The notes beneath the pieces are model-generated. The model ran no database searches and was not told the DNA's origin. It was given only the letters and a program-made list of their open reading frames with translations. Below, one piece after another: positions 99-64,000 of a stretch of DNA of 64,000 nt. How positions within the stretch are numbered: the stretch's first letter is position 1; each line of letters opens with the position of its first letter. The position numbers were made by a program, and so were the translations under genes. The stretch spans positions 226,158 through 290,157 of the IMG/VR virus record IMGVR_UViG_3300024308_000302. One strand, 5' to 3'.

Positions 99-860
99 TC
101 AAATACAAATCATTTGTAACAACTCAATTTTTTGCTCAATACTCATATCATCAAAATCACTACATTTACTACCATGTGTAGAAATAATAAGCTCATCAAT
201 AACAGATTCAATATTATAATTGAAATCTTTGTCCACGTCTACAATTTTGTTTGCGGCCCAAAAATCTTCTTCAAATAAAGTTTCATTTTTAACTAAATAA
301 GCCTTTTTATTTTTTAAATTAAATGCAACCTTAAATTCTTGCTCTTTTTTAGAAAAAATTGTAATAAATGGAATACAAACAATATCATTTTGTTTATTAA
401 ACTTAAAAGATATATAAATACGACAGTTCGCCTTAAAACCATCAATAAAAGAATTAATAATAAAAAAATCATAAAGAACAAATTCAGTAGTCTTATTGAA
501 AGAATTATTATACAAAACACAATCAGAGTTGAACTTTTCAAGAGACTGAAAAGTTTGTTTAAATATATTATGTTGATTTAATGAATTTAAAAAAAGATCT
601 ATAGTTTGAAAAGAATGTTTATAATTATTCATATCAAAAAGATTTCTTATTTCAGATTCATTATCATTAGGGCCAGACACCCCAATTATGTACCCAGAAT
701 TATGAGAAATTGTCATAGATAAATCTTCTCTACCAGAAGAATTAAAAGCCCTTAAAATACAATGCGAAGGGCCATTATTCAAAGAAAGTTCACTATCAGG
801 GTAATGCCTTGAAAAAAATAAGTTAGCTTGTGCTAAAATAGAAGATTGATTATTTGGCAT
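99..860 (-). CDS. hypothetical protein with C-terminal M-x-x-hydrophobic signature
   Basis: 253 aa ORF, AGGT RBS; ends IELLQMICI*. Confidence 0.8.
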   Translation of the reverse strand: MPNNQSSILAQANLFFSRHYPDSELSLNNGPSHCILRAFNSSGREDLSMTISHNSGYIIGVSGPNDNESEIRNLFDMNNYKHSFQTIDLFLNSLNQHNIFKQTFQSLEKFNSDCVLYNNSFNKTTEFVLYDFFIINSFIDGFKANCRIYISFKFNKQNDIVCIPFITIFSKKEQEFKVAFNLKNKKAYLVKNETLFEEDFWAANKIVDVDKDFNYNIESVIDELIISTHGSKCSDFDDMSIEQKIELLQMICI

Positions 861-938
861 AATAACACCTATAAAATAAAGACTGTTATTTTAGCACAAA
901 CGAGTAAAAAAAGTAAAGCTAAAAAAGGCCAAAGCCTT

Positions 939-1466
939 TTATTTGTTTGTTAGGTATTTACCTATGAATGTAATAACAAGTTGAGTACCAACTTCTGTTT
1001 GTATTTCACCTAAACCATCATATGGAGAAACACTACCAGTAATCTCAGTAGCTGATATCTGAACAACACATGTATAAGGCCCAGTGCCTGTACAATTTTG
1101 ATATGGAATTGATATATTGCCATACACTAATCCCATACCACTTACTTCCTCAAGAGTCACAGAATCTATAACAATTTTGTTTGTAGTAGTCAATGTATAC
1201 GTCACTGTATTTTTATCAACTAATCCTGCTGGTGTTTGAGCAGTGATGATAGCATTGGTTGATGGAGTGTCACCAAAAGAACCACCTGTATCCACATAAG
1301 TAGGAGTCTCAGGGTCAGTAGGCGTCTCTGAATTACTTAATATAAATTGTATTGAATTAACTGGAAGAGAACCACCATTAACCTGCTCAAGTGGGACTTG
1401 AACTTGATAATCGGCATAGACACAACTTGAAGCAAGCAAAGCAATAGAAGTAATTAACTTTTTCAT
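939..1466 (-). CDS. secreted protein (signal peptide + YxVxxPLE motif + Pro/Thr linker)
   Basis: MKKLITSIALLASSCVYA signal; YQVQVPLEQ..NSIQF; TPTDPETP; AAGGA RBS. Confidence 0.8.
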   Translation of the reverse strand: MKKLITSIALLASSCVYADYQVQVPLEQVNGGSLPVNSIQFILSNSETPTDPETPTYVDTGGSFGDTPSTNAIITAQTPAGLVDKNTVTYTLTTTNKIVIDSVTLEEVSGMGLVYGNISIPYQNCTGTGPYTCVVQISATEITGSVSPYDGLGEIQTEVGTQLVITFIGKYLTNK

Positions 1467-1650
1467 ATGATCCTTTTTTATTGTAATAAATATATTTTTT
1501 CATATATCATAATAATGTCAATACGATAAGTATTAAATTTAAATTAAATAGAAATAGCGATTTGATCGCAATTTCAAAAAAATATAATATTTAATAAAAA
1601 ATAAACAAAAAAAGCCCTAAGAAGGGCTTTTGGTTGAGTGTGTAATGTAG

Positions 1651-1785
1651 TTACAGTTCTTTTCCTTTATTCTGAGTAGCTTCAGCTTGTTCCCAAGCAG
1701 CTTCTTTTTCCTTTTCATTCTGCTCTTTCAATTGAGCGTAAGCAAGTTCGATTTCTTGTTCTTTAGTCAGTGCAGCTTTAGTCAT
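1651..1785 (-). CDS. small acidic helical protein (44 aa), not in ORF track
   Basis: GGAG RBS; MTKAALTKEQEIELAYAQLKEQNEKEKEAAWEQAEATQNKGKEL*; followed by hairpin at ~1608-1631. Confidence 0.7.
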   Translation of the reverse strand: MTKAALTKEQEIELAYAQLKEQNEKEKEAAWEQAEATQNKGKEL

Positions 1786-1950
1786 TGTGTTTCTCCGTTA
1801 CTTCGTTGTTTATGTGGAGCAAGTATAGCTCAAAATGAAGATGTTGTAAACAAAAAAAATAAAAAAAATCAAAAATATGAGAAGTTTTCAAAAGTAAGAT
1901 TGACTTATAATAAGTTCGATGCAAAAATGACATTTTTAAAAGGAGTTTGT

Positions 1951-2743: not shown

Positions 2744-3514
2744 TTAAATATACATCATTTTAAAAACAGTAATGTCATCATCTACCATATCATCAATCTT
2801 TTTGCCTAACACTGGTAAAGTATATTCAACTTCCATGAAGTCCTTCAGTTTAGAAGCAAATTTATTATCTGGTGTTTTTAACACTTTTCTTACAAAGTTG
2901 ATTCGTCTATATTCTACTTTTTCATTAAAAGTAAAAGAGTAATAGATAACATATTTAAATACATCAGAAAATATGACACTACCTCTTTTTTGTACAGAAT
3001 GACGTAATGTATTGTTTACATCCAACATATCACCAAGCAATTTATTGTAGAAGTCAACGACTTTCAAATCTACATCAGTATAGGTATTAACACTATATGA
3101 CTGTTTAAATGAATCTTTCAAATAAATATCACTAATGTCTATTTCTAAGTCTCGTGGCAATCCATTATTGTAGATTGTAAATGCAGCCGTTAGTAATAAA
3201 GTCTCACCAGTAGGCTCAATTGTCGCTTCATAGACAACAGAAAGAGAGTCAAGACCTGTAGACCAAATACTGGTATTTACAAATAATTCTTTGTAAAAAA
3301 TGTTATGACGATTATCAAATAGATCGTCTAGGTGTTCATATTTATCTACTGGAACAATATTTTTGAGTTGTTCTTTATTAAGTGTTGATAGGTTTTCAAT
3401 AAATATATTTTCTTTTTTCAGGCGAACAATTGCATTATCAAATATTTCTTTTTTCGTTTTAGAAATATATGTACCTAATGTATTAAAATTAGTAAATTTT
3501 TGATTTTTAGTCAT
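2744..3514 (-). CDS. hypothetical protein with C-terminal signature
   Basis: 256 aa; ends ITVFKMMYI*. Confidence 0.8.
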   Translation of the reverse strand: MTKNQKFTNFNTLGTYISKTKKEIFDNAIVRLKKENIFIENLSTLNKEQLKNIVPVDKYEHLDDLFDNRHNIFYKELFVNTSIWSTGLDSLSVVYEATIEPTGETLLLTAAFTIYNNGLPRDLEIDISDIYLKDSFKQSYSVNTYTDVDLKVVDFYNKLLGDMLDVNNTLRHSVQKRGSVIFSDVFKYVIYYSFTFNEKVEYRRINFVRKVLKTPDNKFASKLKDFMEVEYTLPVLGKKIDDMVDDDITVFKMMYI

Positions 3515-3535: not shown

Positions 3536-4357
3536 TTAAATGTCCATCATTTCTTGTAATGTAAATTCATTTTTCAAATCAGAAATATTTGAAATGTTCA
3601 TTTTTTTAAGTTTAAGGACAGATACAATTGCAGTTTCAATTAATTCATTATCTGCTGACATGAACTCATCATATGTCAACATAAGTTCTTGTCCATACAT
3701 ATAGAAATATAAAGCATATTTTTCAGGTACATGAATATCATTTGCTGGATTAAAAAGAAATTTAATAGAAAATGTATTATTACTGAGCTTAAAAATAGAT
3801 GAAGAATATTCAACTTCAAATAAATCAATAATTTTTTTTGATTCTTCTGGATAAAATTTGTTACTAACAACTGTATTGAATAAACTATCATTTAAAATTA
3901 AAAGAGAATCAATTTTTTTGATTGCTGATAAAATACAATTAAAATTTGCTTTTGAATAATGGTTTTTAATGTCGCCATAAATAAAACCAATATAATGTCT
4001 ACAAAATTCATTAAAAAGATATTCTCCTGAAAGTTTTCCTTTTCGTGAGTCATAAAATGTAACATTAAAAAAATCATAATCTGTATGCTCATTATTAATT
4101 TGTGGCAATAGTTTGCCATCTGTCTCAAAAAGAATATTTAAAGATGGGTCAAGATTGCCAGAAATTTCAAAAATAATTGTTACAGGAAAATCAACTTTGT
4201 TACTCACAAGCGATTCAGACTTAAGAAGAGTCAAAAATTCAGCTAGAATATCTAAATCAATAGTAAATTTTTTCTTAGACTCTGTATTTTTTTTACCAAG
4301 TGCTACATAATTGATTTTATCAATATTAAACAGTGTTGTTTTTTCGATATATTTCAT
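3536..4357 (-). CDS. hypothetical protein with C-terminal signature
   Basis: start moved to MKYIEK; ends FTLQEMMDI*. Confidence 0.8.
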   Translation of the reverse strand: MKYIEKTTLFNIDKINYVALGKKNTESKKKFTIDLDILAEFLTLLKSESLVSNKVDFPVTIIFEISGNLDPSLNILFETDGKLLPQINNEHTDYDFFNVTFYDSRKGKLSGEYLFNEFCRHYIGFIYGDIKNHYSKANFNCILSAIKKIDSLLILNDSLFNTVVSNKFYPEESKKIIDLFEVEYSSSIFKLSNNTFSIKFLFNPANDIHVPEKYALYFYMYGQELMLTYDEFMSADNELIETAIVSVLKLKKMNISNISDLKNEFTLQEMMDI

Positions 4358-4435: not shown

Positions 4436-5932
4436 TTATATTTTATTTTTTATCTTATTTTTAATTGTCTTCCCATCGTCAGTGCTCTTATAAAGTTCAA
4501 ATGCTTCATCGTAAGATTTAGCTTCTGTAATAGCAATAGCCTTTAAGAAGTCTCCATTTTGATATAGAGATAACAAATTTGGATAATTGTTTTTTATCAA
4601 GTTCGCTAACTCATCTGGTTTAATATATGTCAATAAACTACTGTTTGCAGTATGATCTAAATGAAGGACAATTTTATGTTCTTGAAGGTAATCTAAAACA
4701 GGAGCAATATAGGCAAGTTTTTCTTCTGCTGTAGCAGTATAGGATAAAGCTGAATCAATTACAAAACAAACTTTCAAATTATCTCGTTGTTCAATACATA
4801 AATTATGGTAATACATTTTAAAGAAACTATTATCACCAGAAATGTGAATGTAGTTATAATCACTCTCTAAATATCTTTTAGATAAAGAATGATAACCATA
4901 AGTTAGACTTGGTTCGGCTGACAAAATAGAAATCTTGGGATCTATTAAATCAAAATCAGCAGTCGTTTCAGACAAAGGAATACCAGAAGCTCTTATAGTG
5001 TTATCATCAATAACAATTTCCATCATAGAGTCTGAAACGGATTTAAACCATTCAGGACGATTATTTTCAATAAAACTAATAAAATCATTAAGAACTGGTG
5101 TATTTAGCATATCTTCTTCACTTTTAGCATTTGCCATTACACCAAGAACTACAGATTCTTTTGCCTGAAACAAATAGAAGTAATCATCAAATTCTTTATA
5201 GTAGTCATCCATAAGCTCTATATAAGTTTGATCAGCATCTATAACAGTAATGTTAAATTTATGCTCAAATTTATGTGGTCTTAAATTAGCATCTAAAGGA
5301 ATTTCTTTGTCCAACAAATCAATAATATTCTTAACGTAGAAGCTAACAGATTGAGCACTGACATCATTACTATTCATTACATCCTTAAAGCAATTAAAAG
5401 TATGACACAATTTAACAATAGGTAAATTTTGAATAGTATATGAAAAGTCAGTAAGATGATTTTTTTCACTAAATGCTAAATTGAATTTAGATATAAAATC
5501 TTTAAAACCATCACTATCATCTAATATATCATTAATAATTTTAACCACTTGTTTATCTGAATTATTTAAAATCGGAATTGCATTAAAATCGTCGTTACGT
5601 GTTGGCTTTATTGAATTTAAAGTATCAGCAAGAGCTAAAGAATATTCATAGGCTTCATTTTCGTCTTCTGTTGGTTGCTTGGAATTTAACTTGGACTCAA
5701 TAAATTTACCGTGTTCATTTTCTGTTAAAATTCTTTTTGATCTGTAACTTATGGCTAAAGGATTATCTTCTAAATCAGTTTTGGATAAACTGAGATCATA
5801 AAAGTCCTTTAATAATGTTGTTTTATAGAATTTTAAAGTTGACAATTCATTGAAATAGTTGTCATTAATAGAATTAGACAATTTAAATTCTTCACGCAAT
5901 TTTATAAAATCTTCTGCTTTTGCTTTTTTCAT
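4436..5932 (-). CDS. hypothetical protein with basic C-terminal tail
   Basis: 498 aa; ATGA overlap with upstream gene; ends KTIKNKIKNKI*. Confidence 0.85.
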   Translation of the reverse strand: MKKAKAEDFIKLREEFKLSNSINDNYFNELSTLKFYKTTLLKDFYDLSLSKTDLEDNPLAISYRSKRILTENEHGKFIESKLNSKQPTEDENEAYEYSLALADTLNSIKPTRNDDFNAIPILNNSDKQVVKIINDILDDSDGFKDFISKFNLAFSEKNHLTDFSYTIQNLPIVKLCHTFNCFKDVMNSNDVSAQSVSFYVKNIIDLLDKEIPLDANLRPHKFEHKFNITVIDADQTYIELMDDYYKEFDDYFYLFQAKESVVLGVMANAKSEEDMLNTPVLNDFISFIENNRPEWFKSVSDSMMEIVIDDNTIRASGIPLSETTADFDLIDPKISILSAEPSLTYGYHSLSKRYLESDYNYIHISGDNSFFKMYYHNLCIEQRDNLKVCFVIDSALSYTATAEEKLAYIAPVLDYLQEHKIVLHLDHTANSSLLTYIKPDELANLIKNNYPNLLSLYQNGDFLKAIAITEAKSYDEAFELYKSTDDGKTIKNKIKNKI

Positions 5933-16754: not shown

Positions 16755-17402
16755 TCAAATAATTAACATCCTGAGTGTAATTAGATTATTTTCAAATTCA
16801 CTAGTATTAATACGATAAGCACCATCAAAGTACCATTCTGGAAACAATTCCTTTGTAATTTCTTTATCATCATTGAGAAATACTTCAAGAAGCCTAAATT
16901 CATCATCTAATGGACAAAGCATATTACGATGCTTAGTAACGTTCAAAACAATATCTTGACTTGATTTTGATTTAAGATAATGAAGCGATTGATATTCAAA
17001 GTTGCTATCATATGAAATTGAGATTTTGTAACCTAACATGCCAGATTTAGAGCATCTTTTTACAATCGTATAAGATAAATCGACATTTGATATAATACCA
17101 TTATTGTCAGTAGTAACTATACAATTACTTCCAAAAACAATATTACTATTAAGCTGTTTTAAAAAATGAGAAATAGGCAATATCGGACTTAAACCAGTTA
17201 GCTCGATTTTTTGATTGTTGTAGGCATAAAACTTATCAAAATTTTTGATATTCTGTTGTTCGCTCATAAAAGAACTGTCAAATTTATTGAATACCAATCG
17301 TGCAATATTGCTTACAAAAGATTGAGCTTGTTTCTTTTTTTTCATAGCTGCATCATAGTTTTCTTGATAAACACTATAATTTGATTTTAAGGTAGGCGTC
17401 AT
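16755..17402 (-). CDS. hypothetical protein with C-terminal signature, related to 55936..56898
   Basis: ELFPEW..AYRINTSEFENNLITLRMLII*. Confidence 0.8.
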   Translation of the reverse strand: MTPTLKSNYSVYQENYDAAMKKKKQAQSFVSNIARLVFNKFDSSFMSEQQNIKNFDKFYAYNNQKIELTGLSPILPISHFLKQLNSNIVFGSNCIVTTDNNGIISNVDLSYTIVKRCSKSGMLGYKISISYDSNFEYQSLHYLKSKSSQDIVLNVTKHRNMLCPLDDEFRLLEVFLNDDKEITKELFPEWYFDGAYRINTSEFENNLITLRMLII

Positions 17403-19358: not shown

Positions 19359-20402
19359 TTAAAATCTTGCCATTTTTAAAATTTCAAAATCTTTAATATT
19401 GATTTCTTCTGCTGCAATATCCAAATTTTTCTTAAAAATCTCAGCAATATCATCCCTAAGAGCCTTATGAATATTATCAACACCATCAAAAGAGATTGTT
19501 TTAAAATTATGTGATGATCTAATATCAATTTTTCTATAAGAAATAAAATGATTTTCAGTAGTAACAACAAAAAATCTATGAAAATCCGATGGAGTATCTT
19601 CAATATTTATAGTATAACAATCATAATGGTCTTTAAATTTATTAGGATCAATCTCTAAAGTAATAAATCCTTTCAATGAATTAAATTCTTGTTTACTACC
19701 TGTCAAATTTATATAAAAAGCCAATGGATAAAATACTGAAACAATATCATCTAATTTAGACTTTGAAAAAAATGGACTTAAAGCTTTTCTTATTGATTTT
19801 GGATGCAAATCAAATTTAATCGAATTTGAACCATCATTTGTTTCAATATATTTACTTTTTAATTCATCTTCACTCATGTAAACAAAAGAATTATCAGGAA
19901 TTTTTGATGTAATAATATCTACATAATCCAAAGCCAATTTATCAATAAATTCTTTTAAAGTAATATTTTTTGGCATAATATCTTGTAATTTTCTTAAAAG
20001 TTCTGAATAGCACTTATCATAAGCAGAACCAGCCAACATTTCACTAAAGGTATATCTATTATTAAAGAGATCAATATAAATATTTTCAAGGGTCTGATTT
20101 TTTCTAATAGCAAATTTAAGATCCCCAAAGAAAAAAACTAATTTATCTATATAAAACCCAACACAAACTTTATCTGCTTTTTTTTGAAGATCCCCATAAA
20201 GAACAGATGAACGAAGATCTGACAAATTTTTTAATTGATCAAATTTTCGATAATCAATTTTAAACATTTCATCAAGAAATATAAAAGTATTTGCATCTGC
20301 TTCGAACATATAGACATCAGAATTTATACTGGAAGATTTCATTTTTGAGAAATCATAAAGTTCATGAAGACGTTCTTTTTTTTGAGTCATAAGATCTGTC
20401 AC
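19359..20402 (-). CDS. paralog family A protein with C-terminal signature
   Basis: GTG start after GGAGG; ends FEILKMARF*. Confidence 0.8.
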   Translation of the reverse strand: MTDLMTQKKERLHELYDFSKMKSSSINSDVYMFEADANTFIFLDEMFKIDYRKFDQLKNLSDLRSSVLYGDLQKKADKVCVGFYIDKLVFFFGDLKFAIRKNQTLENIYIDLFNNRYTFSEMLAGSAYDKCYSELLRKLQDIMPKNITLKEFIDKLALDYVDIITSKIPDNSFVYMSEDELKSKYIETNDGSNSIKFDLHPKSIRKALSPFFSKSKLDDIVSVFYPLAFYINLTGSKQEFNSLKGFITLEIDPNKFKDHYDCYTINIEDTPSDFHRFFVVTTENHFISYRKIDIRSSHNFKTISFDGVDNIHKALRDDIAEIFKKNLDIAAEEINIKDFEILKMARF

Positions 20403-20552: not shown

Positions 20553-21644
20553 TTAGAAACTAATCATAGTAATCAGTTCAATATCTTGATTACTAATATC
20601 TTGCTGTTCAATGTTTAATTTCTCCTTAAACACATTGGCAATATCCTTTTTAAGTTCATTGTATACAGCATCAATACCTTTAATTTTAGTTACCTCATAA
20701 CTTTGAGTAGCAATATTGATGCGATCTCTATGATTAGTATTATAAGAAATAAAATAATCATCAGTAGTAATACCAATAGATCGATATTTCATAATATTGG
20801 AGAAATGCATAGTTTCAGGCATATCAATACCCATAAAGTAACAATCATGATGTCTACTAAATTTATTTATACCATTCAAAGGTCCAATATAACCATGAAG
20901 TTCCTCAAACTTACCAGATGGATTATCAACAAGAGATAAAAACGCAAAATGAGAAAGCACAAATACTATATGATTTAATTTGTCTGTCGGGAAAAACGGT
21001 TTCAATGCTTGTCTAATTTCTGCTGGTTTCAACCCAAATTTTCTAATAGCAGTAGCCATATTAGAATCATCATAATCATCAGAAACATTAGAATATTTTT
21101 CAATAAATTCTTCATTATCAACATATACAAAAGCATTATCAGTAATAGAAGCATTAATAATGTCTTTGGGAGAAGATTTATTTTTAAAATTAAATTCGGC
21201 TAATGTGATATCAGATGGTAATAGGGAATTCAATTCTTCCAGTTTTTTTTGATAGTATTCTTCATAAGCTGAATTATCAATAAAAGAATTAAATGAAAAG
21301 AAAGTTTCATGTATACCAATTTTTGCATTTTCAATTTTTTGGCCACGATTAATATGAAACTTAATGTTACAGTTAAATTTTAATGTACCAGAATCAATAG
21401 CAACAATACAAGAAACTGATTTATCTATATCATGATTCCTAATATGCATTATAAGATTATTTAAATTTTTAATTTGATCAAGTTTCCTATAATCCAACGT
21501 AAAGAACTCATTTAAAAAAATAATAGATCGCTCATCATTCTCAAAAAAATAAAAAGTTGTACTACCAATACATTTAGTTTTTGCTGAATCAAAATCATAC
21601 AGTTCACGAAGACGTGTTTCCATGAGTTGCATTACATCAATCAT
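20553..21644 (-). CDS. paralog family A protein with C-terminal signature
   Basis: tandem paralog of 19359; ends IELITMISF*. Confidence 0.85.
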   Translation of the reverse strand: MIDVMQLMETRLRELYDFDSAKTKCIGSTTFYFFENDERSIIFLNEFFTLDYRKLDQIKNLNNLIMHIRNHDIDKSVSCIVAIDSGTLKFNCNIKFHINRGQKIENAKIGIHETFFSFNSFIDNSAYEEYYQKKLEELNSLLPSDITLAEFNFKNKSSPKDIINASITDNAFVYVDNEEFIEKYSNVSDDYDDSNMATAIRKFGLKPAEIRQALKPFFPTDKLNHIVFVLSHFAFLSLVDNPSGKFEELHGYIGPLNGINKFSRHHDCYFMGIDMPETMHFSNIMKYRSIGITTDDYFISYNTNHRDRINIATQSYEVTKIKGIDAVYNELKKDIANVFKEKLNIEQQDISNQDIELITMISF

Positions 21645-21734: not shown

Positions 21735-21747
21735 GAAAATTATTTAA

Positions 21748-25343: not shown

Positions 25344-26423
25344 TTAAATATCCATCATCTGTGCCAATAATACAATGTCTTCTGTCAAAACATCATATTC
25401 AATATTGTTTTCTTTCAAAATATTAAAAAGAAACGGAGAAGGATGTTTTAAAATAAGATGCATCATATTGTTTTTGAAGAAATCTAATTGAGCTAAAAAT
25501 ATCGAATCTGGAATTTTAGACAACATATCAACAAAGGTTATTTTAATACCATTTTTTAACACCTCAAATTGAAGATGAACAACATTAAAATTACTGTCAG
25601 GATTTAAAGAATTAATTTCAGTATCATATAGCCAAGAAATAAACTTGAAAGTATTCTTATAAGATTTTATAAATTTATTCCAAATAAGCTCAGAAAATAT
25701 AGATGACAAATTTCTATCATAGAAATAGGCATTAACAACCAATTTTTTATTAGAATAATTAAAATAACATGACGAATGGGGAATAGTTAATAAACTAATA
25801 CTTTTATAATCAACAAGTCTGTTTTCAATCATAAATTTAGTTAAACATGATCCTATATTGAGTCTATTTATATAATGACTAGCATAAGATTCAAGTGCAA
25901 TAGGTACACCAGCCAATGCATAAAATGAAAATTTATCACCATTATCAAAATGAATACTATATTTTTCAATAAAGCCAGCCACAATTTTTTTAGAAATGGT
26001 AACATCCATATAAACGATACCGTTTCTAAAAGCATCTTCTTGTGTTACCATCTCGAATTTGTGAATATCTTTAAATTTATACAGTTCAGAAAGAGATGCT
26101 AAATGAAAAAAACCAAAATTTGCAAGTAAAAAATCCATTTTTTCAGATACTGAGTCATAATTAGAAACATCAATAGACAAGGAAAACTGCATACTCGCCC
26201 AAGCAGCTTCTACTCTACGAGGATCAGTAAGAATAACTTCAATAAGTGCTGATGACTCTTCTAATTCAACAGTAAACTTATTCCCATATATGTTTTCTAC
26301 TATAAAAGTATTATCACAACGGTCATGAGAATATCGCAGTCCAGATGAAAATTCTTTTTTATGGATAAAAACAGATTTATTAATAAAGTCAGATAATTGT
26401 AGTCTTTTTTTGATCTTAATCAT
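25344..26423 (-). CDS. paralog family C protein with C-terminal signature
   Basis: ends VLLAQMMDI*; similar to 26436..27551. Confidence 0.8.
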   Translation of the reverse strand: MIKIKKRLQLSDFINKSVFIHKKEFSSGLRYSHDRCDNTFIVENIYGNKFTVELEESSALIEVILTDPRRVEAAWASMQFSLSIDVSNYDSVSEKMDFLLANFGFFHLASLSELYKFKDIHKFEMVTQEDAFRNGIVYMDVTISKKIVAGFIEKYSIHFDNGDKFSFYALAGVPIALESYASHYINRLNIGSCLTKFMIENRLVDYKSISLLTIPHSSCYFNYSNKKLVVNAYFYDRNLSSIFSELIWNKFIKSYKNTFKFISWLYDTEINSLNPDSNFNVVHLQFEVLKNGIKITFVDMLSKIPDSIFLAQLDFFKNNMMHLILKHPSPFLFNILKENNIEYDVLTEDIVLLAQMMDI

Positions 26424-26435: not shown

Positions 26436-27551
26436 TCAAACAGTATACATATCAAAAATAGAAACTGAATCTTCACCGAATGTTTCATTTCTATTTGCAA
26501 TAACACCATTATCAATAAAGAAATTAATCATAGTTTCTGATGGATACTTCAATGCCAATGCCATAAAATTAGAAGTTAATCTTTTTTCATCTGATTCAAA
26601 TAACAATTTCAAAAAGTCAACAGGTGATTCAGACCTTTTAATATTAATTTCAACAGAATCTTTATTAATGACACACTCAAGTTCAACAAAAGTTGGTTGA
26701 TAAGGCTGAGCTAAAAATCGACTTCTCTCTAAGCCAATATGATAAGAATAACTAACACCAAACAAAGAACATAGTTGATAAATCAACTTCGACCTATAGA
26801 CGATATGGTTAACCACGCCAGTAGGAAAAATATTTACAACATCGTCATAATTCATGACTGTTCTTAATGTAATAGAACCATTTTTCTTATACACTAAGAA
26901 ACTGGTATCAAACATAGAAATCTTTTTCACGTTTGCAATATTAATAAATTTTTTATAATGCTCAATAAATGAAGCTCTATTGTATAGAGTCTCAAAACGT
27001 CTACTTAAAGTGCTGTTAGCATATATATAATCAAAATCTAAGACTTCAAAACAAATGCCTGCCAAAGAATAATATTTTGTTGTAGGAATGCCAAGTCCTG
27101 AAATCTCCCACTTATCGAAAAGTGAAATACCCTTCAATTTTTTAAAATCCAAATGAAATTCAACATCATAATTGTCATGCAGAAAAACTTGGCCAGTTTG
27201 GAATATGTCTGAAAACTTAACAAATCCTATTTTTTTAAAAATTTTAAGCGAATGAAATGATGAAATATGAAAAAAGATAATGGATTCAGTCAAGAATTGA
27301 AGTGCATCTTCATCTTTTTCATAAGGATCTAAAGTAACAGAAAAATAATTTTTATGACCTAAACCCACTGCAACATAAGCTTTAGAGGTATTTTTATCCA
27401 GTTTCACAAAGATCTTATTACTATATGAATTAGTAAAATGGTATTCGCCATACTTGGCAACACACTTAATCTTATTCATAAATCTTTTGTCTGCTTTCTT
27501 AATGATAATTGGTCGCTCAAAAAGCTTATTATAAGATGGTTTATTAAACAT
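26436..27551 (-). CDS. paralog family C protein with C-terminal signature
   Basis: FFHISSF/FFHLASL, YSLAG/YALAG, LKYPS/LKHPS; ends VSIFDMYTV*. Confidence 0.8.
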   Translation of the reverse strand: MFNKPSYNKLFERPIIIKKADKRFMNKIKCVAKYGEYHFTNSYSNKIFVKLDKNTSKAYVAVGLGHKNYFSVTLDPYEKDEDALQFLTESIIFFHISSFHSLKIFKKIGFVKFSDIFQTGQVFLHDNYDVEFHLDFKKLKGISLFDKWEISGLGIPTTKYYSLAGICFEVLDFDYIYANSTLSRRFETLYNRASFIEHYKKFINIANVKKISMFDTSFLVYKKNGSITLRTVMNYDDVVNIFPTGVVNHIVYRSKLIYQLCSLFGVSYSYHIGLERSRFLAQPYQPTFVELECVINKDSVEINIKRSESPVDFLKLLFESDEKRLTSNFMALALKYPSETMINFFIDNGVIANRNETFGEDSVSIFDMYTV

Positions 27552-45184: not shown

Positions 45185-46243
45185 TTAAATAGACATCATC
45201 TTATACAACAACAATGAATGATCAGTGAGTTCACTTGAAGGAATATTTAGTCTTTTAGTAAATCTACTTTTCACTTTTTCAAAAAGATGATTATAAATAT
45301 TTTCATAACCACTCAAAGAAACCAGATCTTGAGTATGATGATTAACTTCCATATAACCAATATCTGGATTTGTAAGCGAAAAATACAAACCAATAGTGCA
45401 TGGAACATCATCGTAGTATACAACCATTATAGAATATAAGTTATCTTCTACTTTGAAATGTTTAGTTGGTCGAATCAAGTTAAAGAATAGTTCATATCTT
45501 TGCATATTATACAATAAACACGAATCAAATCTTAATAGTCCCTCAATAATCTTAACTTGACTTACGAGTTGCTTGCTAAAAACCAATGGAAGTGAATCAA
45601 AAAGTCTTTTTGGTTCAACTCCAAAATTAAAGAAATACATTGCGAAATCATCTGGAGTAATATGCATCAAATCTTTATTTACAAGTCTTTCCTTTTGGAT
45701 ATCAATTACCGTTTTTTTTGACAAAGAGAGTAACTTTTTAAAAGTCATATCATTTTCAAGAAATTCACGAGTTTTAACTAAAATACCAGAATACAGATTT
45801 TCAAAAGAAACATAATCTATCAAACAGTCAGACTTAAAAAAAGAATTTTGATAGAGGATAAATTCAACAACATGATCATCTGATTCTCTTGAAAATGAAA
45901 AACTCAGTGTATCGCCCAAATAGAACTTAACAGTAGCTCTTGGAACGTGGCTATATTGGCTAATTGGAATGGCAATTTGTAATGATTTATTTGCATCCTT
46001 TTTTTCTTTTTCCAAATCGCTGACATAGTAATAGAAATCAATAAGTGTTGAAAGTTGTTTAATTTTTTTAAGATTATAATTGCAACTATGAAATTCAAAA
46101 AATGAAGCAATAAATTTATAATCTCGATCACTACGAGGAAGTGTATAAATTGTAAAATTATTTTTTACAGTGATATCTGCAACATCATCCAAGTTGTAAA
46201 AAGATTGCAATCTATCTAAGCAATCATCATAAAAAGTAGGCAT
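45185..46243 (-). CDS. paralog family A protein with C-terminal signature
   Basis: begins MPTFYDD; ends LLLYKMMSI*. Confidence 0.85.
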   Translation of the reverse strand: MPTFYDDCLDRLQSFYNLDDVADITVKNNFTIYTLPRSDRDYKFIASFFEFHSCNYNLKKIKQLSTLIDFYYYVSDLEKEKKDANKSLQIAIPISQYSHVPRATVKFYLGDTLSFSFSRESDDHVVEFILYQNSFFKSDCLIDYVSFENLYSGILVKTREFLENDMTFKKLLSLSKKTVIDIQKERLVNKDLMHITPDDFAMYFFNFGVEPKRLFDSLPLVFSKQLVSQVKIIEGLLRFDSCLLYNMQRYELFFNLIRPTKHFKVEDNLYSIMVVYYDDVPCTIGLYFSLTNPDIGYMEVNHHTQDLVSLSGYENIYNHLFEKVKSRFTKRLNIPSSELTDHSLLLYKMMSI

Positions 46244-47676: not shown

Positions 47677-48456
47677 TCAAATTAAAGACATTTTCATTAC
47701 ATTCAAGTTTTCATCAAATCCATCATCGAATATACCATTGTCATAAAGCTCTTTCATCTTGAAATAGAAATGAGAGAGTTTGTCATTAGTGTCAAGTTGA
47801 GTGTATTCAAAATAAGGATAAAATTCTAAAAAAATTGGAAATGCTGAATGAATAGTTGCTAAATTTTTACTAAGAAAATTATTAAATAAACAAAACTCAT
47901 CATCTGGTGTTTCATAAGAAGTCCTAATTGAATAATCGTTTGTACTCAAGTCAATATCCCCACGGATTGAATTATGTTTGCTATCCATGTAATAATAGAA
48001 AGTAAATTCATCATCATTATCTGTATAAAAATTTCTTTCTAACAAATAATCTTTGATTTCATTTTTAGAATCAAGATTAATGTCTACACGAATTAAATGT
48101 GCTAAATCAGGAAATTTTAACGAATTATCATATAAACCATATTCAGCAGTGAAAGTTATATATTCAAAATTACCATATGAGTCATAATTAAACTGGATAT
48201 TACCAGCACTTTTACCAATGCCATAAGTAGAAGTTGCCCTGAAATTATGGCCTATAAGACAACTAGTCAAACTAATGTTTTCAAAGTTAATTTCTGGATT
48301 AAACTTTTCGTTAAATTGATTAAAAAGGTGAATAATTCTATGTTTAAAATAGAATTGATGCTCTGACTTCATGAGCACCAATTTAACCTTTTGATCGTTT
48401 AAACAAGAAAAGTCAGGATTTAAAAAATCGAATATAACGGACTCATCAACTTTCAT
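47677..48456 (-). CDS. hypothetical protein with C-terminal signature
   Basis: ends LNVMKMSLI*. Confidence 0.8.
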   Translation of the reverse strand: MKVDESVIFDFLNPDFSCLNDQKVKLVLMKSEHQFYFKHRIIHLFNQFNEKFNPEINFENISLTSCLIGHNFRATSTYGIGKSAGNIQFNYDSYGNFEYITFTAEYGLYDNSLKFPDLAHLIRVDINLDSKNEIKDYLLERNFYTDNDDEFTFYYYMDSKHNSIRGDIDLSTNDYSIRTSYETPDDEFCLFNNFLSKNLATIHSAFPIFLEFYPYFEYTQLDTNDKLSHFYFKMKELYDNGIFDDGFDENLNVMKMSLI

Positions 48457-54362: not shown

Positions 54363-54363
54363 C

Positions 54364-54602: not shown

Positions 54603-55322
54603 TTAGATAGACATCATTTCTACCAAAAGTAATGAGGATTTTGTTTTCCTAACCAAATCATATTTTTCTTTAAGATATAGGTCATAAAAACATTTTTCAA
54701 AAGAAAAATGAGGATCTTTATTAATTGAAACATTCTTTTTTAAATGATCAGGTATATCATTAGAATCATTTTTATTAATCGGCATTAAATATTGCACATT
54801 GAACTTGTTGTTAGAAGTATTAAGATTCACCCAAATCAAGCGTCTGTTTAGCTCAAGATCCCACTTATATTTAATAACATTGTCTCTTAATCTTATAGTA
54901 ATAGAAAGTCCATCATAAAATAAAGCTTCAATGTTATTATTATACTCTTCACAACCTACATAATTTGTTGAGATCTCTTTTTCAAGTTTAAACTTTTTGA
55001 TATTTTCAAGAAAGGCATTTTTTATACTGCCATCATTATGAATGAAATGAGATGAAACGTCTGGTGTGATGTCAAAAATCTCCAACTCATTATCAAGACA
55101 ATATCGTACAATAAAGTCAAAGTTATATTGAGTAGTTATAGAAAATTCGAGAGCAGTAGGACCATTAGATGACGATGTACCATACTTAGGATTAACCCTA
55201 ATATCTAAAATGATTAAATCAGAATTAAAAACTAAAGATAATTTTGATTTAATCCAATACTTTTTATCATCATCACTGACAGTCCAAGATGCTTGGTTAA
55301 GTTTTTTTTGTATCTTATCCAT
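54603..55322 (-). CDS. hypothetical protein with C-terminal signature
   Basis: ends LLLVEMMSI*. Confidence 0.8.
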   Translation of the reverse strand: MDKIQKKLNQASWTVSDDDKKYWIKSKLSLVFNSDLIILDIRVNPKYGTSSSNGPTALEFSITTQYNFDFIVRYCLDNELEIFDITPDVSSHFIHNDGSIKNAFLENIKKFKLEKEISTNYVGCEEYNNNIEALFYDGLSITIRLRDNVIKYKWDLELNRRLIWVNLNTSNNKFNVQYLMPINKNDSNDIPDHLKKNVSINKDPHFSFEKCFYDLYLKEKYDLVRKTKSSLLLVEMMSI

Positions 55323-55935: not shown

Positions 55936-56898
55936 TTAAAGCATAAGCATATCTATAAGCAACAAACGATTATTAAATTCAGAAGAATTAAAATCATAAG
56001 CAGAAGGAATACAGAACTCAGGAAAAGTTAATTTCAATTCTTCATCAGAGTCTAATACAAGGTGTAATTTTATTAATTGTCCAATATCAGTCAAGCAAAG
56101 ATCTTTAACAGGTAATTTAACTGATTTAGAAAAATTACTGTTACAGAAGAATGTACAAATATTATCAGTAATGGCACCACAGGTATCATACATATTAGTT
56201 ACTATTACAAAAATCTCCTTTTTACGAGAATCTGAAGTCTCATAATATAGAGATGGTGAAGTGGATTGAAATTTTACTTTTGTAAGATGCAAAGAATGAT
56301 CAAAAGCAAATGAAACTGTACTACTAATTTGCCCAAATGAAATATTTTCATTAATCATATTAATTTTTACTTGAATTGATTCCACATTTTTAGTTAAAAA
56401 ATTAGAAACATCATCATCAATATAAGGATAATACGATTTATTATCAATAACCTTATCTACACTATTTACGTCATAAGTGTAATCTTTTAAAAATTTATGA
56501 ATTTGTTTTTTCATCAAATAATGAGTTTCTTCACCTGAAATTTCATAACTATCCTTCGATTTATATACATTCAAATTAGGAGTTATAACAATATTCAATA
56601 ACTCATCACCAACATCATCTGAAAGTGAATAACTTAAATGTACATGACTGAATGAAAGATCATCATTAAAAATAGCCCAAAGGACAGTATGAGCATTGCT
56701 GAAGAAATTAAGTACAGGTTGAAAATCAACAGGTAGAGGAATATCAGGATTAATAATTTTCAATGAATGCTTATCCAGATAAACTGATTCTCGTTCATTA
56801 ATAAAGCAAGCAGCACTGGACAGGACTTTAAGAACAGCAATATCAGATGCTTTCAAATGTAATAAAATACGTTCAATTATTTCAAATGTTGCTTCCAT
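55936..56898 (-). CDS. hypothetical protein with C-terminal signature, related to 16755..17402
   Basis: LTFPEF..AYDFNSSEFNNRLLLIDMLML*. Confidence 0.8.
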   Translation of the reverse strand: MEATFEIIERILLHLKASDIAVLKVLSSAACFINERESVYLDKHSLKIINPDIPLPVDFQPVLNFFSNAHTVLWAIFNDDLSFSHVHLSYSLSDDVGDELLNIVITPNLNVYKSKDSYEISGEETHYLMKKQIHKFLKDYTYDVNSVDKVIDNKSYYPYIDDDVSNFLTKNVESIQVKINMINENISFGQISSTVSFAFDHSLHLTKVKFQSTSPSLYYETSDSRKKEIFVIVTNMYDTCGAITDNICTFFCNSNFSKSVKLPVKDLCLTDIGQLIKLHLVLDSDEELKLTFPEFCIPSAYDFNSSEFNNRLLLIDMLML

Positions 56899-58681: not shown

Positions 58682-59719
58682 TTAATAATTTATCATATGA
58701 CACAACAAAACTTGATTAGTAGTTATATCTTCCATATTGATGTTTTCAAGATTTAATGTGTTAACTATTGTATCAAAAATCTTTGTTCTAAAAGTGTCAT
58801 AAACTACAGAGATATTATCAATAGACACAAAAACACCTTTATTATTACAGCTATAATTAAAGCCTGATTCTGATAAGTTAATTGATATAGTTTCATATTT
58901 ATTGTTTGAAAATTTAATAGTATATAGTGTAGAATCAACTAAAAATCTACTTACTTTTTCATTACGTTTTACGAAATAAGAAAAACAAGAATCACCGGAT
59001 ATATAATGATAGAATTGAATGACAGAAATTAGTTGAAGTATTTCATGAGCTTTATGATAACCAAGAACAGACAATAAGAATGACTTAAATTTACTGAAGG
59101 ATAGTTCAACAGTAGAATCATGAGCTATGAATGATATTGAATTTGAAGAAATATTTTGAACAAAATCATTCTTCCTGAAAATTTCAAAATAATCCTCAAA
59201 AATTGTATTGTAACAAACAAGCACATCTGAAAATTTAATTTCTTTAATCTTAGGATTTTTTAAATAATTTTTGATAACTTCCATATAAGTTTTATGAAGT
59301 AATGAATCATCCATAATTTGTTCTCTATTAAAATTTCTAAGTTCAATTGTAAATATGATTTCACCATTTTCTGGAATATATATTTTAGAATTCAAACTAC
59401 CAAGATAAATATAGAAATCATTATTAATACGTTGAATCATATATAAGTTCGAATAACTAGAACTACCATTTAAAAGTTTATGAAGGATTCGTATCGAGCT
59501 TAATTGAAGAAAATATCTATAATTGAAAGGAAATATCTCATTAATCCCTTTTAAGAAGGACACAATATCTGAATGACAATCCTTAATGAAATAAAGTTCT
59601 GAAGTAGGTTTTAATTTAACAATTCGCTGTTCATTATTATTTAACTGGCGATTAAAGTAATCAGAACCAAATAAAGATTCAACCATAAGAATGATTTGCT
59701 GATGATAATTTGTATTCAT
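58682..59719 (-). CDS. paralog family A protein with C-terminal signature
   Basis: ends VLLCHMINY*. Confidence 0.8.
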   Translation of the reverse strand: MNTNYHQQIILMVESLFGSDYFNRQLNNNEQRIVKLKPTSELYFIKDCHSDIVSFLKGINEIFPFNYRYFLQLSSIRILHKLLNGSSSYSNLYMIQRINNDFYIYLGSLNSKIYIPENGEIIFTIELRNFNREQIMDDSLLHKTYMEVIKNYLKNPKIKEIKFSDVLVCYNTIFEDYFEIFRKNDFVQNISSNSISFIAHDSTVELSFSKFKSFLLSVLGYHKAHEILQLISVIQFYHYISGDSCFSYFVKRNEKVSRFLVDSTLYTIKFSNNKYETISINLSESGFNYSCNNKGVFVSIDNISVVYDTFRTKIFDTIVNTLNLENINMEDITTNQVLLCHMINY

Positions 59720-59860
59720 AATAAAAACCTTGAAAAGAGTGCAAATATTATACATATAAGTTGAACAAGAGTAAACAAAAAATTCCAAAAATAAGAGATA
59801 ATTCATAAATTGACAAAAAAAATAAACAATATAAAATTATATAAAATAGAGGATTAAAAT

Positions 59861-60168: not shown

Positions 60169-61206
60169 TTATTTATATTTCACGATGAAATAAACATTTA
60201 AATCTTGGAATGTTAAATAAAGAGGATCTATATCCAATGTTTTTGATATATCTTTAATTAATACTGTTTTAAGAAAATTATAAATTTCACAATAACCATG
60301 CAGATGAACACTTTTACCTTCATTATCGATATATGCCAATTTAAATAAAGATTCATCAGTATTAATAGCCAATCTATATGAGTTAATTTTGCTTTCAAAA
60401 GTTATTACATTGTACGAATTAAGTAATTTTGATTTATATCGATTAAAAATATAATCTATATTATTAAAAAATGGTCTTATAGATTTATTAAAAACAAAAC
60501 AATCAAGTATTTCTAAAAAATGAATTAAGGTTTTTAATTGGTTAATACCTTTTGAATTAACTTTAGATTTCTTTAAAATGTCAAGTATAGCATCAAAACC
60601 ATGATCTTTAATTAAAACAATTTCATATTCATGTGAAAGATATTTTGAAGCATTCTTATAAAGGTCTGTAATAGAGATATCAGCAAAAAGATTTTTCTTG
60701 AAAGAGTTTTGAATTACTGACTCTATATCAAGATTACAAAATTGAAGAACATTTTTATCATTAATAGTTAACAGGCGGGGATAATGAGAAATTTTTGAAT
60801 TCAAAAAATCCATATAAATGGTGTCATATTTTTCTTCAAACTCATCAACACAATATCTACATCCGTTAATAATAACAAAAATGTCATTCATGCCAATAAA
60901 TATTTCAAAACATGGTTTTATATTAATAGTGAGTTTATCTTCCCATATATCCAAGTAAATATATGGTTCAAAATGTTTTGATTCCATAAAGCTCAATATA
61001 TTCATGAGTGAAATAAATTGATTAATTTTATTAACATTAAGATTGGGAATTAAATTTAATAAATCATTAAATTTCTTATAGTCATATTTATAAATAATGG
61101 AAATCGTAGACAGAATGAGTCCATCAGATAGGCTATAACTAAAAGCACCATCTTTAGGATAGGACTTAATAATAAAATCATTAATAATAGAAAAGATAGA
61201 TTTCAC
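60169..61206 (-). CDS. paralog family A protein, variant C-terminus
   Basis: GYCEIYNFLK..LDI..DLNVYFIVKYK*. Confidence 0.75.
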   Translation of the reverse strand: MKSIFSIINDFIIKSYPKDGAFSYSLSDGLILSTISIIYKYDYKKFNDLLNLIPNLNVNKINQFISLMNILSFMESKHFEPYIYLDIWEDKLTINIKPCFEIFIGMNDIFVIINGCRYCVDEFEEKYDTIYMDFLNSKISHYPRLLTINDKNVLQFCNLDIESVIQNSFKKNLFADISITDLYKNASKYLSHEYEIVLIKDHGFDAILDILKKSKVNSKGINQLKTLIHFLEILDCFVFNKSIRPFFNNIDYIFNRYKSKLLNSYNVITFESKINSYRLAINTDESLFKLAYIDNEGKSVHLHGYCEIYNFLKTVLIKDISKTLDIDPLYLTFQDLNVYFIVKYK

Positions 61207-61679: not shown

Positions 61680-61696
61680 GATATCAAGACCTTTAA

Positions 61697-62356
61697 TTAG
61701 GTGAACAGATGTTCACCAATTGCAAACTTTTGACTTGCACTATCAACATTATTCAAAGAAGGAAGATATTCAATGATGTAATCAGGAACTGATTCCTCGG
61801 AGAAAAATAGCGTGTAGTCAAAAAGCATAATGAAAGCAGACAAATTGTAAACAACAGAAGAAAGCGTACTAACATCTGTGAGCAATTCAGCACCTGAATT
61901 ATAGATGATAGCATGTGCATCTTTGTCAGCTACACCTTTTGAATCAAATGCAAAAATGTAGTTTTCATGTGCTTTTGGCTTATGAAGACAAACTGACAAC
62001 GACTTACAGTTTTGATGGTAAGCTTCTCGAATATCATAAATATTAGAATCAAAAGTGATTCGAACAGGAACATCAACATAATCCACACCAGCAATTCCAA
62101 TAAGTTTACCTACACGAACAGTAAAATATTTGGAATAGCTATCTTCAATCTCTTTCTGAATGTCCAAAAATGTCATTGCTTTGTTCACACAGTCATCAAG
62201 ACCTGACCCAACAATGACTTTATAATCATTCTTATTAAAAAAACGCAATTGACAAGAATCTGGAGAATTACTTGCAACTTTAGCTGAATCATGTTCAATA
62301 GTCGGAGCATAAATACTAAGCCAGTGATTTCTTTCTTCTTGTGTATATTTTTTCAT
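61697..62356 (-). CDS. hypothetical protein
   Basis: 219 aa. Confidence 0.75.
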   Translation of the reverse strand: MKKYTQEERNHWLSIYAPTIEHDSAKVASNSPDSCQLRFFNKNDYKVIVGSGLDDCVNKAMTFLDIQKEIEDSYSKYFTVRVGKLIGIAGVDYVDVPVRITFDSNIYDIREAYHQNCKSLSVCLHKPKAHENYIFAFDSKGVADKDAHAIIYNSGAELLTDVSTLSSVVYNLSAFIMLFDYTLFFSEESVPDYIIEYLPSLNNVDSASQKFAIGEHLFT

Positions 62357-62408
62357 TTTTGAAGATCTCTTAAATTGAAGTATGGATTATATCAAAAACC
62401 AATACAAA

Positions 62409-62876
62409 TTAGCAATCAAAAACATCAAAACGATGAACCAAAGACTGATCTTCTTCTTTAATAATACGCAAACTCAAAAGTTTGAAGTTATCAATATTCA
62501 AATCACTACGACCAATGCTTGACATAACTGTATGGTAGTTATCAACAAAATATTTAGAACGGTCAATAATTTCAGAAATAACCAAATCATCAGGGACTTC
62601 TTCAATATAAATCTGTACTGAATTATATTTATTGCCATGTTGAGCTTCGGATGGATAAATATCGACTGGACTATAGCATTCAGACCCCGGATTTTCTGGA
62701 TCTTCAATATGAATGATGTTTTCTTTAAACCAATCAAGATTTTGAATATCAGCAGAATATTTTTTTGAAATCTCTGCTCCAACACCAGAATCACCCCACT
62801 CACCCGTTACAAATGCACAAAAATTACGTTCAAAATTGCCAGCATAACTGTTAGTATCAATAATCAGGTAGTACAT
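62409..62876 (-). CDS. hypothetical protein, paralog of 61203..61679
   Basis: 155 aa, GAGGA RBS. Confidence 0.8.
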   Translation of the reverse strand: MYYLIIDTNSYAGNFERNFCAFVTGEWGDSGVGAEISKKYSADIQNLDWFKENIIHIEDPENPGSECYSPVDIYPSEAQHGNKYNSVQIYIEEVPDDLVISEIIDRSKYFVDNYHTVMSSIGRSDLNIDNFKLLSLRIIKEEDQSLVHRFDVFDC

Positions 62877-62935
62877 AATAAGTCCTCTTTAAAAGTTAAT
62901 TATATAGCAAAAAAAGTAAAAATAAAAGAAATATT

Positions 62936-64000
62936 TTAAATTTTAAGCATTTGATATAGTTCAATAGATTTATTACAAAGGTCTTGATTTTCTATTCCAG
63001 TAACAGCAGAAATCTTATCCAACAAGGATTTTTTCAAGTGCTCATAAATATTATCAATACCACGAATACAAAGTGGTTCATAATCAAATTCTTCTGTCCT
63101 ACATTCATAAACCAAACAATCAGAATGGGTAGTAATATATAGGTCTTGCCATCCATTAATTTTTTGATTATGTGTGAAAGTTATATTGTATAAATAATGT
63201 TCATCTCGAAATTTATTTATTACATCTTGAAATCTGATTTCAATTTTAAATTTTTTTGAATAAAAATCTAAATCATCCAATTGTTCTTTAAAAACAAGAA
63301 TACTAAAAATTTCATTTAGTTTATTCAAATGATCATTACTTAAAAATGGGCTAAGGTATTTTTGAACTTTATAATTTGTGATATCAAATTCATGAGACTT
63401 AGATCCATTAATTAAATCCAAGTTAACAATAGAATCCGATTCGTTTTTTTTATGAAATAAATTATTAAATTCTGTAGCTGTATAATATGAAATCTTGTTA
63501 TCAACAATTATAGAATTAATAAACTCTTTTAAATCTAAGTTCATAGTATGAATGAAAGACTTAGCTGTGATATTGGCAGGCAATAAAGCATTAAGTGTAG
63601 TTAATCTTTCTTGATACGTTTTTTCATAAGCTGTTCCATCTATAAGTTCATTAAGAGAAAACTCATCAAAATGAAATCTAATTTTCAGATTACTTAAACT
63701 TGTTTTATTAAATACTGCAAACATAAGCCTTGGTCCATGACTAAACATAACATTCTTATTAGTGTAAATAATTTTAACTTTAAATGATTGTTTAGTCTCG
63801 CCCTTCTGAATATAATCAAGAAGCCACATAATAGATTCTAATTGTGCAATTTTATGACTGTCAAGATTGAAAAATAGAGAAACAATTTCTTCAAATCTAT
63901 GATCATATTCAAAATGATAAACACGCGGCAATACTTCTGAATCATCATGTTCATATTTTTTTTGAATTGCATCTACAAATTCATCATAAAAAGATGGCAT
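62936..64000 (-). CDS. paralog family A protein with C-terminal signature
   Basis: begins MPSFYDE (cf. MPTFYDD at 46243); ends IELYQMLKI*. Confidence 0.85.
   Translation of the reverse strand: MPSFYDEFVDAIQKKYEHDDSEVLPRVYHFEYDHRFEEIVSLFFNLDSHKIAQLESIMWLLDYIQKGETKQSFKVKIIYTNKNVMFSHGPRLMFAVFNKTSLSNLKIRFHFDEFSLNELIDGTAYEKTYQERLTTLNALLPANITAKSFIHTMNLDLKEFINSIIVDNKISYYTATEFNNLFHKKNESDSIVNLDLINGSKSHEFDITNYKVQKYLSPFLSNDHLNKLNEIFSILVFKEQLDDLDFYSKKFKIEIRFQDVINKFRDEHYLYNITFTHNQKINGWQDLYITTHSDCLVYECRTEEFDYEPLCIRGIDNIYEHLKKSLLDKISAVTGIENQDLCNKSIELYQMLKI

Follow-up and report, generated by a model that had tools for sequence, protein, structure and literature searches.

In this study, a 64,000-nt stretch of DNA from IMG/VR record IMGVR_UViG_3300024308_000302 (positions 226,158 to 290,157; hereafter the window) was analyzed for a C-terminal motif shared by a set of its predicted proteins. 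The window is the last 64 kb of this 290-kb record, which is itself cut from contig Ga0247725_1000001 (1,539,155 bp), where the window occupies positions 494,412-558,411. In scale the replicon is thus 1.54 Mb, and it is not a 290-kb phage. Upon translation, 14 open reading frames (ORFs; Table 1) were found to end with h-x-h-x-x-M-x-x-h (h, hydrophobic residue) directly before the stop codon, and their products are called carriers below, each named by its first coordinate. All 14 nine-residue tails quoted in a preliminary description made from the sequence alone were reproduced exactly, with the same counts: all 14 have Met at -4 and a hydrophobic residue at both -1 and -9, and 13/14 are hydrophobic at -7, where carrier 16755 has Thr.

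After each carrier stop codon (TAA, n = 10; TGA, n = 4) came either a G+C-rich hairpin with its T-run or the Shine-Dalgarno sequence and ATG of the next gene. The tails are therefore genuine C-termini, and stop-codon recoding or an ORF-calling artifact was ruled out. A signal at the DNA level rather than the protein level was ruled out by synonymous codon variation at the conserved Leu and Ile. The full motif was present in 14 of the 74 non-overlapping window ORFs of at least 80 aa. Met was at -4 in 16 of the 74, against a Met frequency of 0.0226 (binomial P ~9e-12), so that Met at this position is enriched over background within the window. The two non-carriers with Met at -4 (40439-41194 and the small ORF 34335-34598) have tails that do not fit the motif, and the recognizable enzymes of the window lack it, as had been stated. 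The pattern occurred at 17 further sites in ~16,600 internal positions (~0.001 per position). Among control genes, it was found in 0/40 of phage G and 0/48 of GAP32, comparable stretches of two AT-rich jumbo phages having been used, and in 1/25 of RB69.

When the source contig was walked beyond the window, carriers were found to go on past both of its sides and on both strands. Among the 126 genes encoding 100 aa or more in the contiguous ~113 kb, 27 (~1 gene in 5) were carriers, and these fell into 19 BLAST families; statements below on genes seen or not seen refer to these ~113 kb unless another range is given. Alignment of the 27 carriers from the C-terminus showed a signature of ~21 residues, L-N-I…D-I-T…h-E-L-h-x-M-h-x-I, at C-termini only. 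It begins with L at -21 (hydrophobic in 21/27), N/G at -20 and I at -19, followed by D/E at -15, I/L/F at -14, T at -13 and a polar run from -12 to -10, in which -11 is never hydrophobic. The last nine positions comprise a hydrophobic residue at -9 (25/27), E at -8, L at -7 (26/27), a hydrophobic residue at -6 (24/27), a polar residue at -5, Met at -4, a hydrophobic residue at -3 (23/27), a polar residue at -2 and mostly Ile at -1. The nine-residue motif of the preliminary description holds in 14/14 window carriers, but the conserved part is ~21 residues and not 9. Likewise, the carrier size of 215-371 aa is correct for the window set and becomes 197-374 aa once the neighbors are included. The placement of all carriers on the minus strand, true within the window, is uninformative, since 62 of the 74 ORFs share that strand and a carrier just outside the window runs opposite to its neighbors.

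To avoid circularity, each family was scored with a position matrix derived from the other BLAST families, with positions -4 and -1 omitted. In this leave-one-family-out scoring, 25 of the 27 carriers were in the top 3.6% of non-carrier C-termini and 25 of the 27 were in the top 2.1% of internal M..h windows. A hidden Markov model (HMM) of the tail gave no significant internal match, and the best match in the reversed-sequence control had an E value of 0.13, in agreement with a strictly C-terminal motif. The C-terminal signature is real, lineage-specific and not previously described.

Table 1. Carriers of the C-terminal motif and one degenerate relative in the window
Feature	Position	Strand	Length (aa)	C-terminal tail	Remarks
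Carrier	99..860	-	253	IELLQMICI	Full-length homolog with tail in distant relative, L012 5933-6715
Carrier	2744..3514	-	256	ITVFKMMYI	Followed by terminator hairpin
Carrier	3536..4357	-	273 (from ATG start)	FTLQEMMDI	Paralog at L008 12737-13570
Carrier, family C	16755..17402	-	215	LITLRMLII	AlphaFold model
Carrier, family A	19359..20390	-	343	FEILKMARF	Own TGATATAAT promoter-like site and terminator
Carrier, family A	20553..21644	-	363	IELITMISF	AlphaFold model
Carrier	25344..26423	-	359	VLLAQMMDI	Weak full-length likeness to 26436 (E 0.04)
Carrier	26436..27551	-	371	VSIFDMYTV	Tail kept in ortholog, L002 2725-3867
Carrier, distant family A	45185..46243	-	352	LLLYKMMSI	
Carrier, singleton	47677..48456	-	259	LNVMKMSLI	Poorest fit to extended signature
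Carrier, singleton	54603..55322	-	239	LLLVEMMSI	
Carrier, family C	55936..56898	-	320	LLLIDMLML	
Carrier, very distant family A	58682..59806	-		VLLCHMINY	
Carrier, family A	62936..64000	-	354	IELYQMLKI	
Family-A-like, sixth member	60169..61206	-		…LNVYFIVKYK	Degenerate tail: Ile for Met and one extra residue

The carriers were soluble and mildly acidic (median pI 5.7) and had neither transmembrane segments nor signal peptides, the latter as previously stated. In family A, carriers 19359, 20553, 62936 and 45185 were joined full-length by BLAST, and 58682 was added by alignment. The hydrophobic N-terminus of 58682 is the product of an over-long ORF call, and its true start is probably an internal Met near 59719. 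Family C consists of 16755 and 55936, and 25344 was weakly similar to 26436. With the last 30 residues removed, jackhmmer recovered these families and their orthologs and linked no family to another. Profile-profile comparison of 13 families by hhalign gave nothing significant, many of the best local alignments being tail-to-tail. At least three families plus singletons, with bodies that do not align by eye, had been proposed; BLAST, tail-less jackhmmer and hhalign, all without a link between families, bear this out. A tail HMM from family A alone matched family A only, including its degenerate sixth member.

Searches of Pfam and PHROG with the carriers gave no match, and nothing significant was obtained when PDB sequences were searched with the tail and family-A profiles. 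The ESM Atlas yielded weak leads only, such as NurA at 0.41. The statement that the motif has no described counterpart is consistent with the lack of a match in Pfam, PHROG, PDB or BFVD. A resemblance of L-N-I…D-I-T to the acyl carrier protein pattern L-G-V-x-x-x-E-V-T was considered and rejected, as none of 26 tails gave a PP-binding match even at E 10 and the proteins stop before helix II.

Two families were modeled with AlphaFold. The family-A model (20553, alignment of 44 sequences) was confident, with a predicted local distance difference test (pLDDT) score of 89.8 and a predicted template modeling (pTM) score of 0.82, and displayed two alpha/beta halves. The second half has a long helix (220-240), five strands, a helix (324-343), an eight-residue loop and a terminal helix (352-362). 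The body has pLDDT values above 90, and the terminal helix drops to 70 and then 54, which fits a helix not fully satisfied in the monomer. The family-C model (16755, 10 sequences) was of moderate confidence (pLDDT 71, pTM 0.65); in it a long N-terminal helix leads into five antiparallel strands, which are followed by two short helices, a 13-residue loop and a terminal helix (200-214). Both models were searched with Foldseek against PDB and BFVD, and no match with E <0.01 was found (TM <=0.3), so that even the confident family-A model has no neighbor in these databases. The best match of the family-C model, p32/gC1qR (MAM33), likewise an acidic protein with an N-terminal helix, an antiparallel sheet and C-terminal helices, was non-significant (E 0.14, TM 0.25-0.30) and is a topological echo only. 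As judged from the models, the tail is the last helix of a conserved, predicted-ordered helix-loop-helix and not a floppy peptide on a linker.

Both models are alpha/beta with a similar element order (long helix, five-strand sheet, helix, loop, terminal helix). This likeness, by element order alone, would be compatible with one very old superfamily. The main rival to the docking reading given below, and a less likely one, is that all carriers are paralogs from a single ancient and massively expanded superfamily, in which the terminal helix is a buried or self-association element, the slowest-evolving part, with no external reader. The core would then run from a long helix through a five-strand antiparallel sheet and a further helix to the terminal helix, with family A as a two-domain version whose C-terminal half has the element order of family C. 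Several features would be expected of such paralogs: conservation extends over ~21-45 ordered residues, turn and N-cap included; hydrophobic residues take up over half of the circumference of the tail helix; and the carriers are clustered, similar in size and adjacent, like tandem duplicates. However, no significant body similarity was obtained among the 13 families, the HMM from family-A tails misses the other families, the family-C model is moderate only, and the lower pLDDT of the terminal helix in family A speaks against a tightly buried core element. On the structural check that had been suggested, whether the bodies share a fold, the two modeled families showed a similar element order, with no link at the sequence level. 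The carriers resemble the multigene families of large viruses and jumbo phages in being clustered, tandem, fast-diverging orphans of similar size with one conserved terminal element. They differ from them in that the carrier families cannot be joined by sequence or profile, and in that the conserved part is a C-terminal signature of ~21 residues and not a domain.

Conservation was also followed in relatives. A family-A profile searched against 1.84 billion representative proteins detected 47 clusters only, nearly all of 320-405 aa, and two GTDB scans detected no relative of family A. Met at -4 was kept in ~85% of the 47 clusters and was Ile or Leu in the others, one of which had a single extra residue. 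On a syntenic 184.8-kb contig, orthologs of 46-55% identity retained the tails, and the signature was conserved in relatives down to ~20% identity. The distant contigs L012 and L013 have clusters of carriers from several families, of differing lengths, side by side, and at a locus on a 1.85-Mb contig 10 of 22 genes end with …L-I-E-M-x-x-I.

The reading we favor, with a probability of about 0.42, is that the tail is a conserved terminal docking helix on a fast-diverging accessory repertoire; we infer its partner. The nine residues are the last part of a conserved C-terminal module, predicted as a helix, a short turn (L-N/G-I), an acidic N-capped loop (D/E-I/L-T/S) and an amphipathic terminal helix (h-E-L-h-x-M-h-x-I-COOH). 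The proteins that end with this module are soluble, mildly acidic and accessory; they form a very large set, specific to the lineage and diverging fast, that spans at least 113 kb. With its hydrophobic face (Met -4, -1, -3, -6, -7, -9), the terminal helix would fit into a hydrophobic pocket on a single common partner, and individual activities, probably in host take-over or counter-defense, would reside in the variable bodies. The precedent for such a plug-in helix comes from T4-family DNA polymerases, which insert their C-terminal tail into the gp45 sliding clamp. That the signal is read by a common partner at the free C-terminus, as the preliminary description had it, is plausible: a strictly C-terminal motif on sequence-unrelated families speaks for it, whereas the ordered helix-loop-helix and the lack of a partner gene in the region read speak against it.

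Several observations weigh against a docking helix. The loop before the terminal helix is itself conserved and predicted to be ordered, unlike a classical linear motif on a disordered linker, and the element order shared by the family-A and family-C models would also suit one old superfamily with a helix that is merely structural. No partner was identified, and no clamp, ATPase, protease, secretion or capsid gene was recognized; translocation, packaging, chaperone and protease genes were not found next to the carriers either. In L020, from a 1.04-Mb relative (GC 0.24), tails have Ile or Leu for Met (…SLNLFNILNY, …IFDLIKIINY), so Met is lineage-typical but not absolutely required. In a few family-A members the tail is longer by one residue or ends with a polar one, and its register relative to the carboxylate is therefore not absolute. 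A duplicated gene pair encoding 612-aa and 498-aa proteins was considered as a candidate reader and rejected, since it resembles viral hypothetical proteins only.

A tail serving as a docking or sorting code would define a large client repertoire at once in an almost wholly 'dark' genome and would offer a simple experimental handle on the hub; a tail that is the fossil of one superfamily would make the carriers an extreme paralog radiation with new folds. It is conceivable, although less likely than not, that in a lineage of phage-like genomes between 1.0 and 1.85 Mb a fifth of the proteins, perhaps hundreds that are otherwise unrelated, have a dedicated C-terminal helical address that is read by one machine (a clamp-like hub, a packaging/ejection apparatus or a compartment gate), which would be a new viral protein-routing code.

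In comparison with known systems, the clamp-binding tail of the RB69/T4 polymerases is the closest sequence precedent, by resemblance and not by membership. RB69 gp43 (NC_004928) ends with KKASLFDMFDF, an exact fit to the motif at every position, and shares with the carriers the order h(-7) h(-6) acidic(-5) M(-4) h(-3) x(-2) h(-1). Like the carrier tails, the T4-family tails (RB69 gp43 …KKASLFDMFDF; T4 gp43 …EKASLDFLFG) are at the extreme C-terminus with an acidic/polar run ahead, and they bind gp45 as a short helix via its hydrophobic face, the carrier tails being predicted helical. The T4 motif LDFLF binds gp45 as an amphipathic helix, the RB69 gp43 tail likewise binds gp45, and related hydrophobic motifs binding in this manner are used by T4 gp43, gp33, gp55 and T4 ligase (PMC6212786). 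Clamps are known hubs with many clients, and the tail could accordingly be a sliding-clamp interaction motif, with the carriers tethered to DNA as clients of a T4-gp45-like, PCNA-like or host beta clamp. We consider this distinctly unlikely. The T4-family tails are on one to few replication/transcription enzymes, whereas the carriers are dozens of orphan alpha/beta proteins, and no phage offers a precedent for orphan clamp clients in such numbers. A hydrophobic motif of the LDFLF / LFDMFDF type is present at the extreme C-terminus of the carriers, but none has a recognizable nucleic-acid enzyme domain and, with no Pfam, PHROG, PDB or BFVD match, they do not appear as DNA/RNA transaction proteins. 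Moreover, the match is a hydrophobic pattern of 7-9 residues, whereas the signature here extends to -21, and no clamp or clamp loader was recognized in the sequence read. Neighboring ORFs of 228 and 229 aa, gp45-sized, were examined as clamp candidates and rejected, as none gave a clamp match.

C-terminal signals of other systems include encapsulin cargo peptides, those of Dot/Icm (E-block, hydrophobic residue at -3 or -4) and the LxxxMxF of ESX. The tail could be a sorting signal of this kind, either a capsid-targeting or cargo-loading peptide on proteins packaged and injected with the DNA or a type IV, I or VII secretion signal. This reading would account for the C-terminal place, the acidic stretch before the hydrophobic end, the many unrelated carriers and the lack of signal peptides, and the Dot/Icm type IVB, ESX and encapsulin signals likewise place a short acidic/hydrophobic C-terminal signature on many unrelated proteins of one genome, that of ESX with a conserved Met near the end. 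It is unlikely all the same. The known signals are disordered or loosely conserved on linkers, in contrast to the sharply conserved, predicted helix in an ordered context seen here, and no trace of their machines was observed, no secretion-system, capsid, scaffold or prohead-protease gene being seen nearby. Dot/Icm effectors have their signal, with a Glu-rich block, in a disordered C-terminal stretch of 20-35 aa; the carriers share the acidic stretch and have Met -4, but order and a helix are predicted for their tail, secretion genes were not seen, and the genome is phage-like, unlike that of an intracellular bacterium. The WXG100-type substrates of ESX form helical hairpins of ~100 aa in which Met is at -3 and Phe at -1, whereas the carriers are alpha/beta proteins of 197-374 aa with Met at -4. 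Encapsulin and capsid-targeting peptides are on flexible linkers, and their genes are adjacent to or co-regulated with shell or scaffold genes; the linker here is conserved and ordered, and neither a capsid nor a scaffold gene was detected. The sigma-70-type promoter-like sites at carriers are typical of early genes and not of late virion genes.

Non-polar C-termini are classical degradation tags. As a degron, the tail would hand early proteins to a host or replicon protease of the ClpXP, Lon or FtsH type and limit their lifetime, which would suit carriers that resemble early accessory genes. However, the signature is far longer and more specific than known C-degrons, the tail ends with Ile, Phe or Val and not with Ala-Ala, and no protease or adaptor gene was seen. 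A degron is thus a highly improbable explanation; like the sorting signal, it is a possible reading with no positive support.

A second assembly, Ga0310131_000001 (another Joint Genome Institute record), was also 1,539,155 bp, rotated and reverse-complemented, which suggests a closed circle assembled twice; the genome is probably circular. Relatives are on contigs of 1,042,066 and 1,851,360 bp. The literature search gave 841 kb as the size of the largest phage genome (bioRxiv 10.1101/2025.01.14.633092), so that an apparently circular contig of 1.54 Mb, ~2x that size, is notable in its own right. No counterpart was obtained from literature searches that covered megabase phages and Dependentiae. 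Gene content was phage-like, with almost no Pfam matches and no ribosomal or other housekeeping genes met. The genes around the carriers include RNA ligase, HNH, MazG, Acb1-like and cREC_REC genes, which are of phage-type accessory and anti-defense kinds, in line with the docking reading; LigT-like and ASCH genes, a DEDDh exonuclease and a TnpB-like protein were also found. One protein family is shared with GAP32- and CBB-type jumbo phages, and an Rfam search over 147 kb detected 3 tRNAs and no other family. The genome may belong to a giant virus that infects bacteria, to some other giant element or to a cell that contains an enormous dark region.

Sigma-70-type promoter-like sites with an extended -10 individually precede many of the carrier genes, and terminators follow some of these genes. 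On the minus strand, for example at 27587, 25314, 24844, 20463, 18221 and 896, a T-rich run, TGnTATAAT (extended -10) and a TTG… -35 were observed upstream of genes. Together with Shine-Dalgarno sequences and hairpin terminators, the extended -10/-35 sites represent bacterial-type expression signals. Near-identical DNA of window positions 19000-23000 (up to 100% of sampled words) was found in subsurface, soil, food, freshwater, plant, silage and wastewater runs and also in RNA libraries of named organisms, which may point to a clone of cosmopolitan spread or to contamination from laboratories or reagents. The fragments in RNA libraries were 100% identical and sparse, too sparse to be proof of transcription.

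Just past the end of the window, a metabolic island (L011 2694-12403; contig ~559.6-569.3 kb) interrupts the orphan genes. It encodes a class-I HMG-CoA reductase, a UbiA prenyltransferase, an 851-aa phosphoenolpyruvate (PEP)-utilizing enzyme (PEP-synthase/Rph-like), DUF3419, two unknowns and an AMP-forming acyl-CoA ligase. The closest relatives of the PEP-utilizing enzyme in the GTDB scans were only 36-37% identical and came from Melainabacteria-type metagenome-assembled genomes. The island marks the IMG/VR 'provirus' boundary, and carriers resume past it.

The TnpB/Cas12f-like protein (565 aa; 38535-40232, minus strand) matched the Cas12f1-like_TNB domain and transposase PHROGs. Its gene lies ~1.4 kb from a tRNA-Leu(TAA) gene (37088-37171, minus strand) that is ~92% identical to tRNA-Leu genes of Pseudomonas jumbo phages. 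Genes with an RNA-repair or counter-defense flavor are located at 15959-16612, 57444-57830, 57020-57427 and in other small ORFs; they include an RNA ligase (phrog_14301, E 5e-47; 41% identical to mycobacteriophage RNA ligases), a cREC_REC protein (75% identical in the 1.04-Mb relative) and bPH_2. Small ORFs gave Acb1-like, LigT-like, MazG, ASCH, DSPc and Cor-like matches.

The 612-aa and 498-aa proteins are encoded by a duplicated two-gene module at 4436-7767 (minus strand), the other copy being at L018 14369-17709 (633 aa and 480 aa). The module is kept in the distant relative L013, with two copies of 622-641 aa, and has no family match; the Atlas clusters nearest to the 612-aa protein are viral hypothetical proteins of Uroviricota.

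Other shared C-terminal endings were also observed. The paralogs 17607-18188 and 48472-49188 (minus strand, 36% identity) end with …GKGVKIIVQPD and …GTGIRISIRPD, respectively, and this ending is kept in the L002 and L003 orthologs. Four proteins unlinked by BLAST (24371-24802, 24867-25277, 51507-52181 and 52670-53218, all on the minus strand) end with K-[KV]-[VI]-A, as …KKKIA, …KKVVA, …NKKVA and …EKVVA, and a similar …KQRVA is present at L018 14369-16270. This ending could be due to chance or could be another terminal signature.

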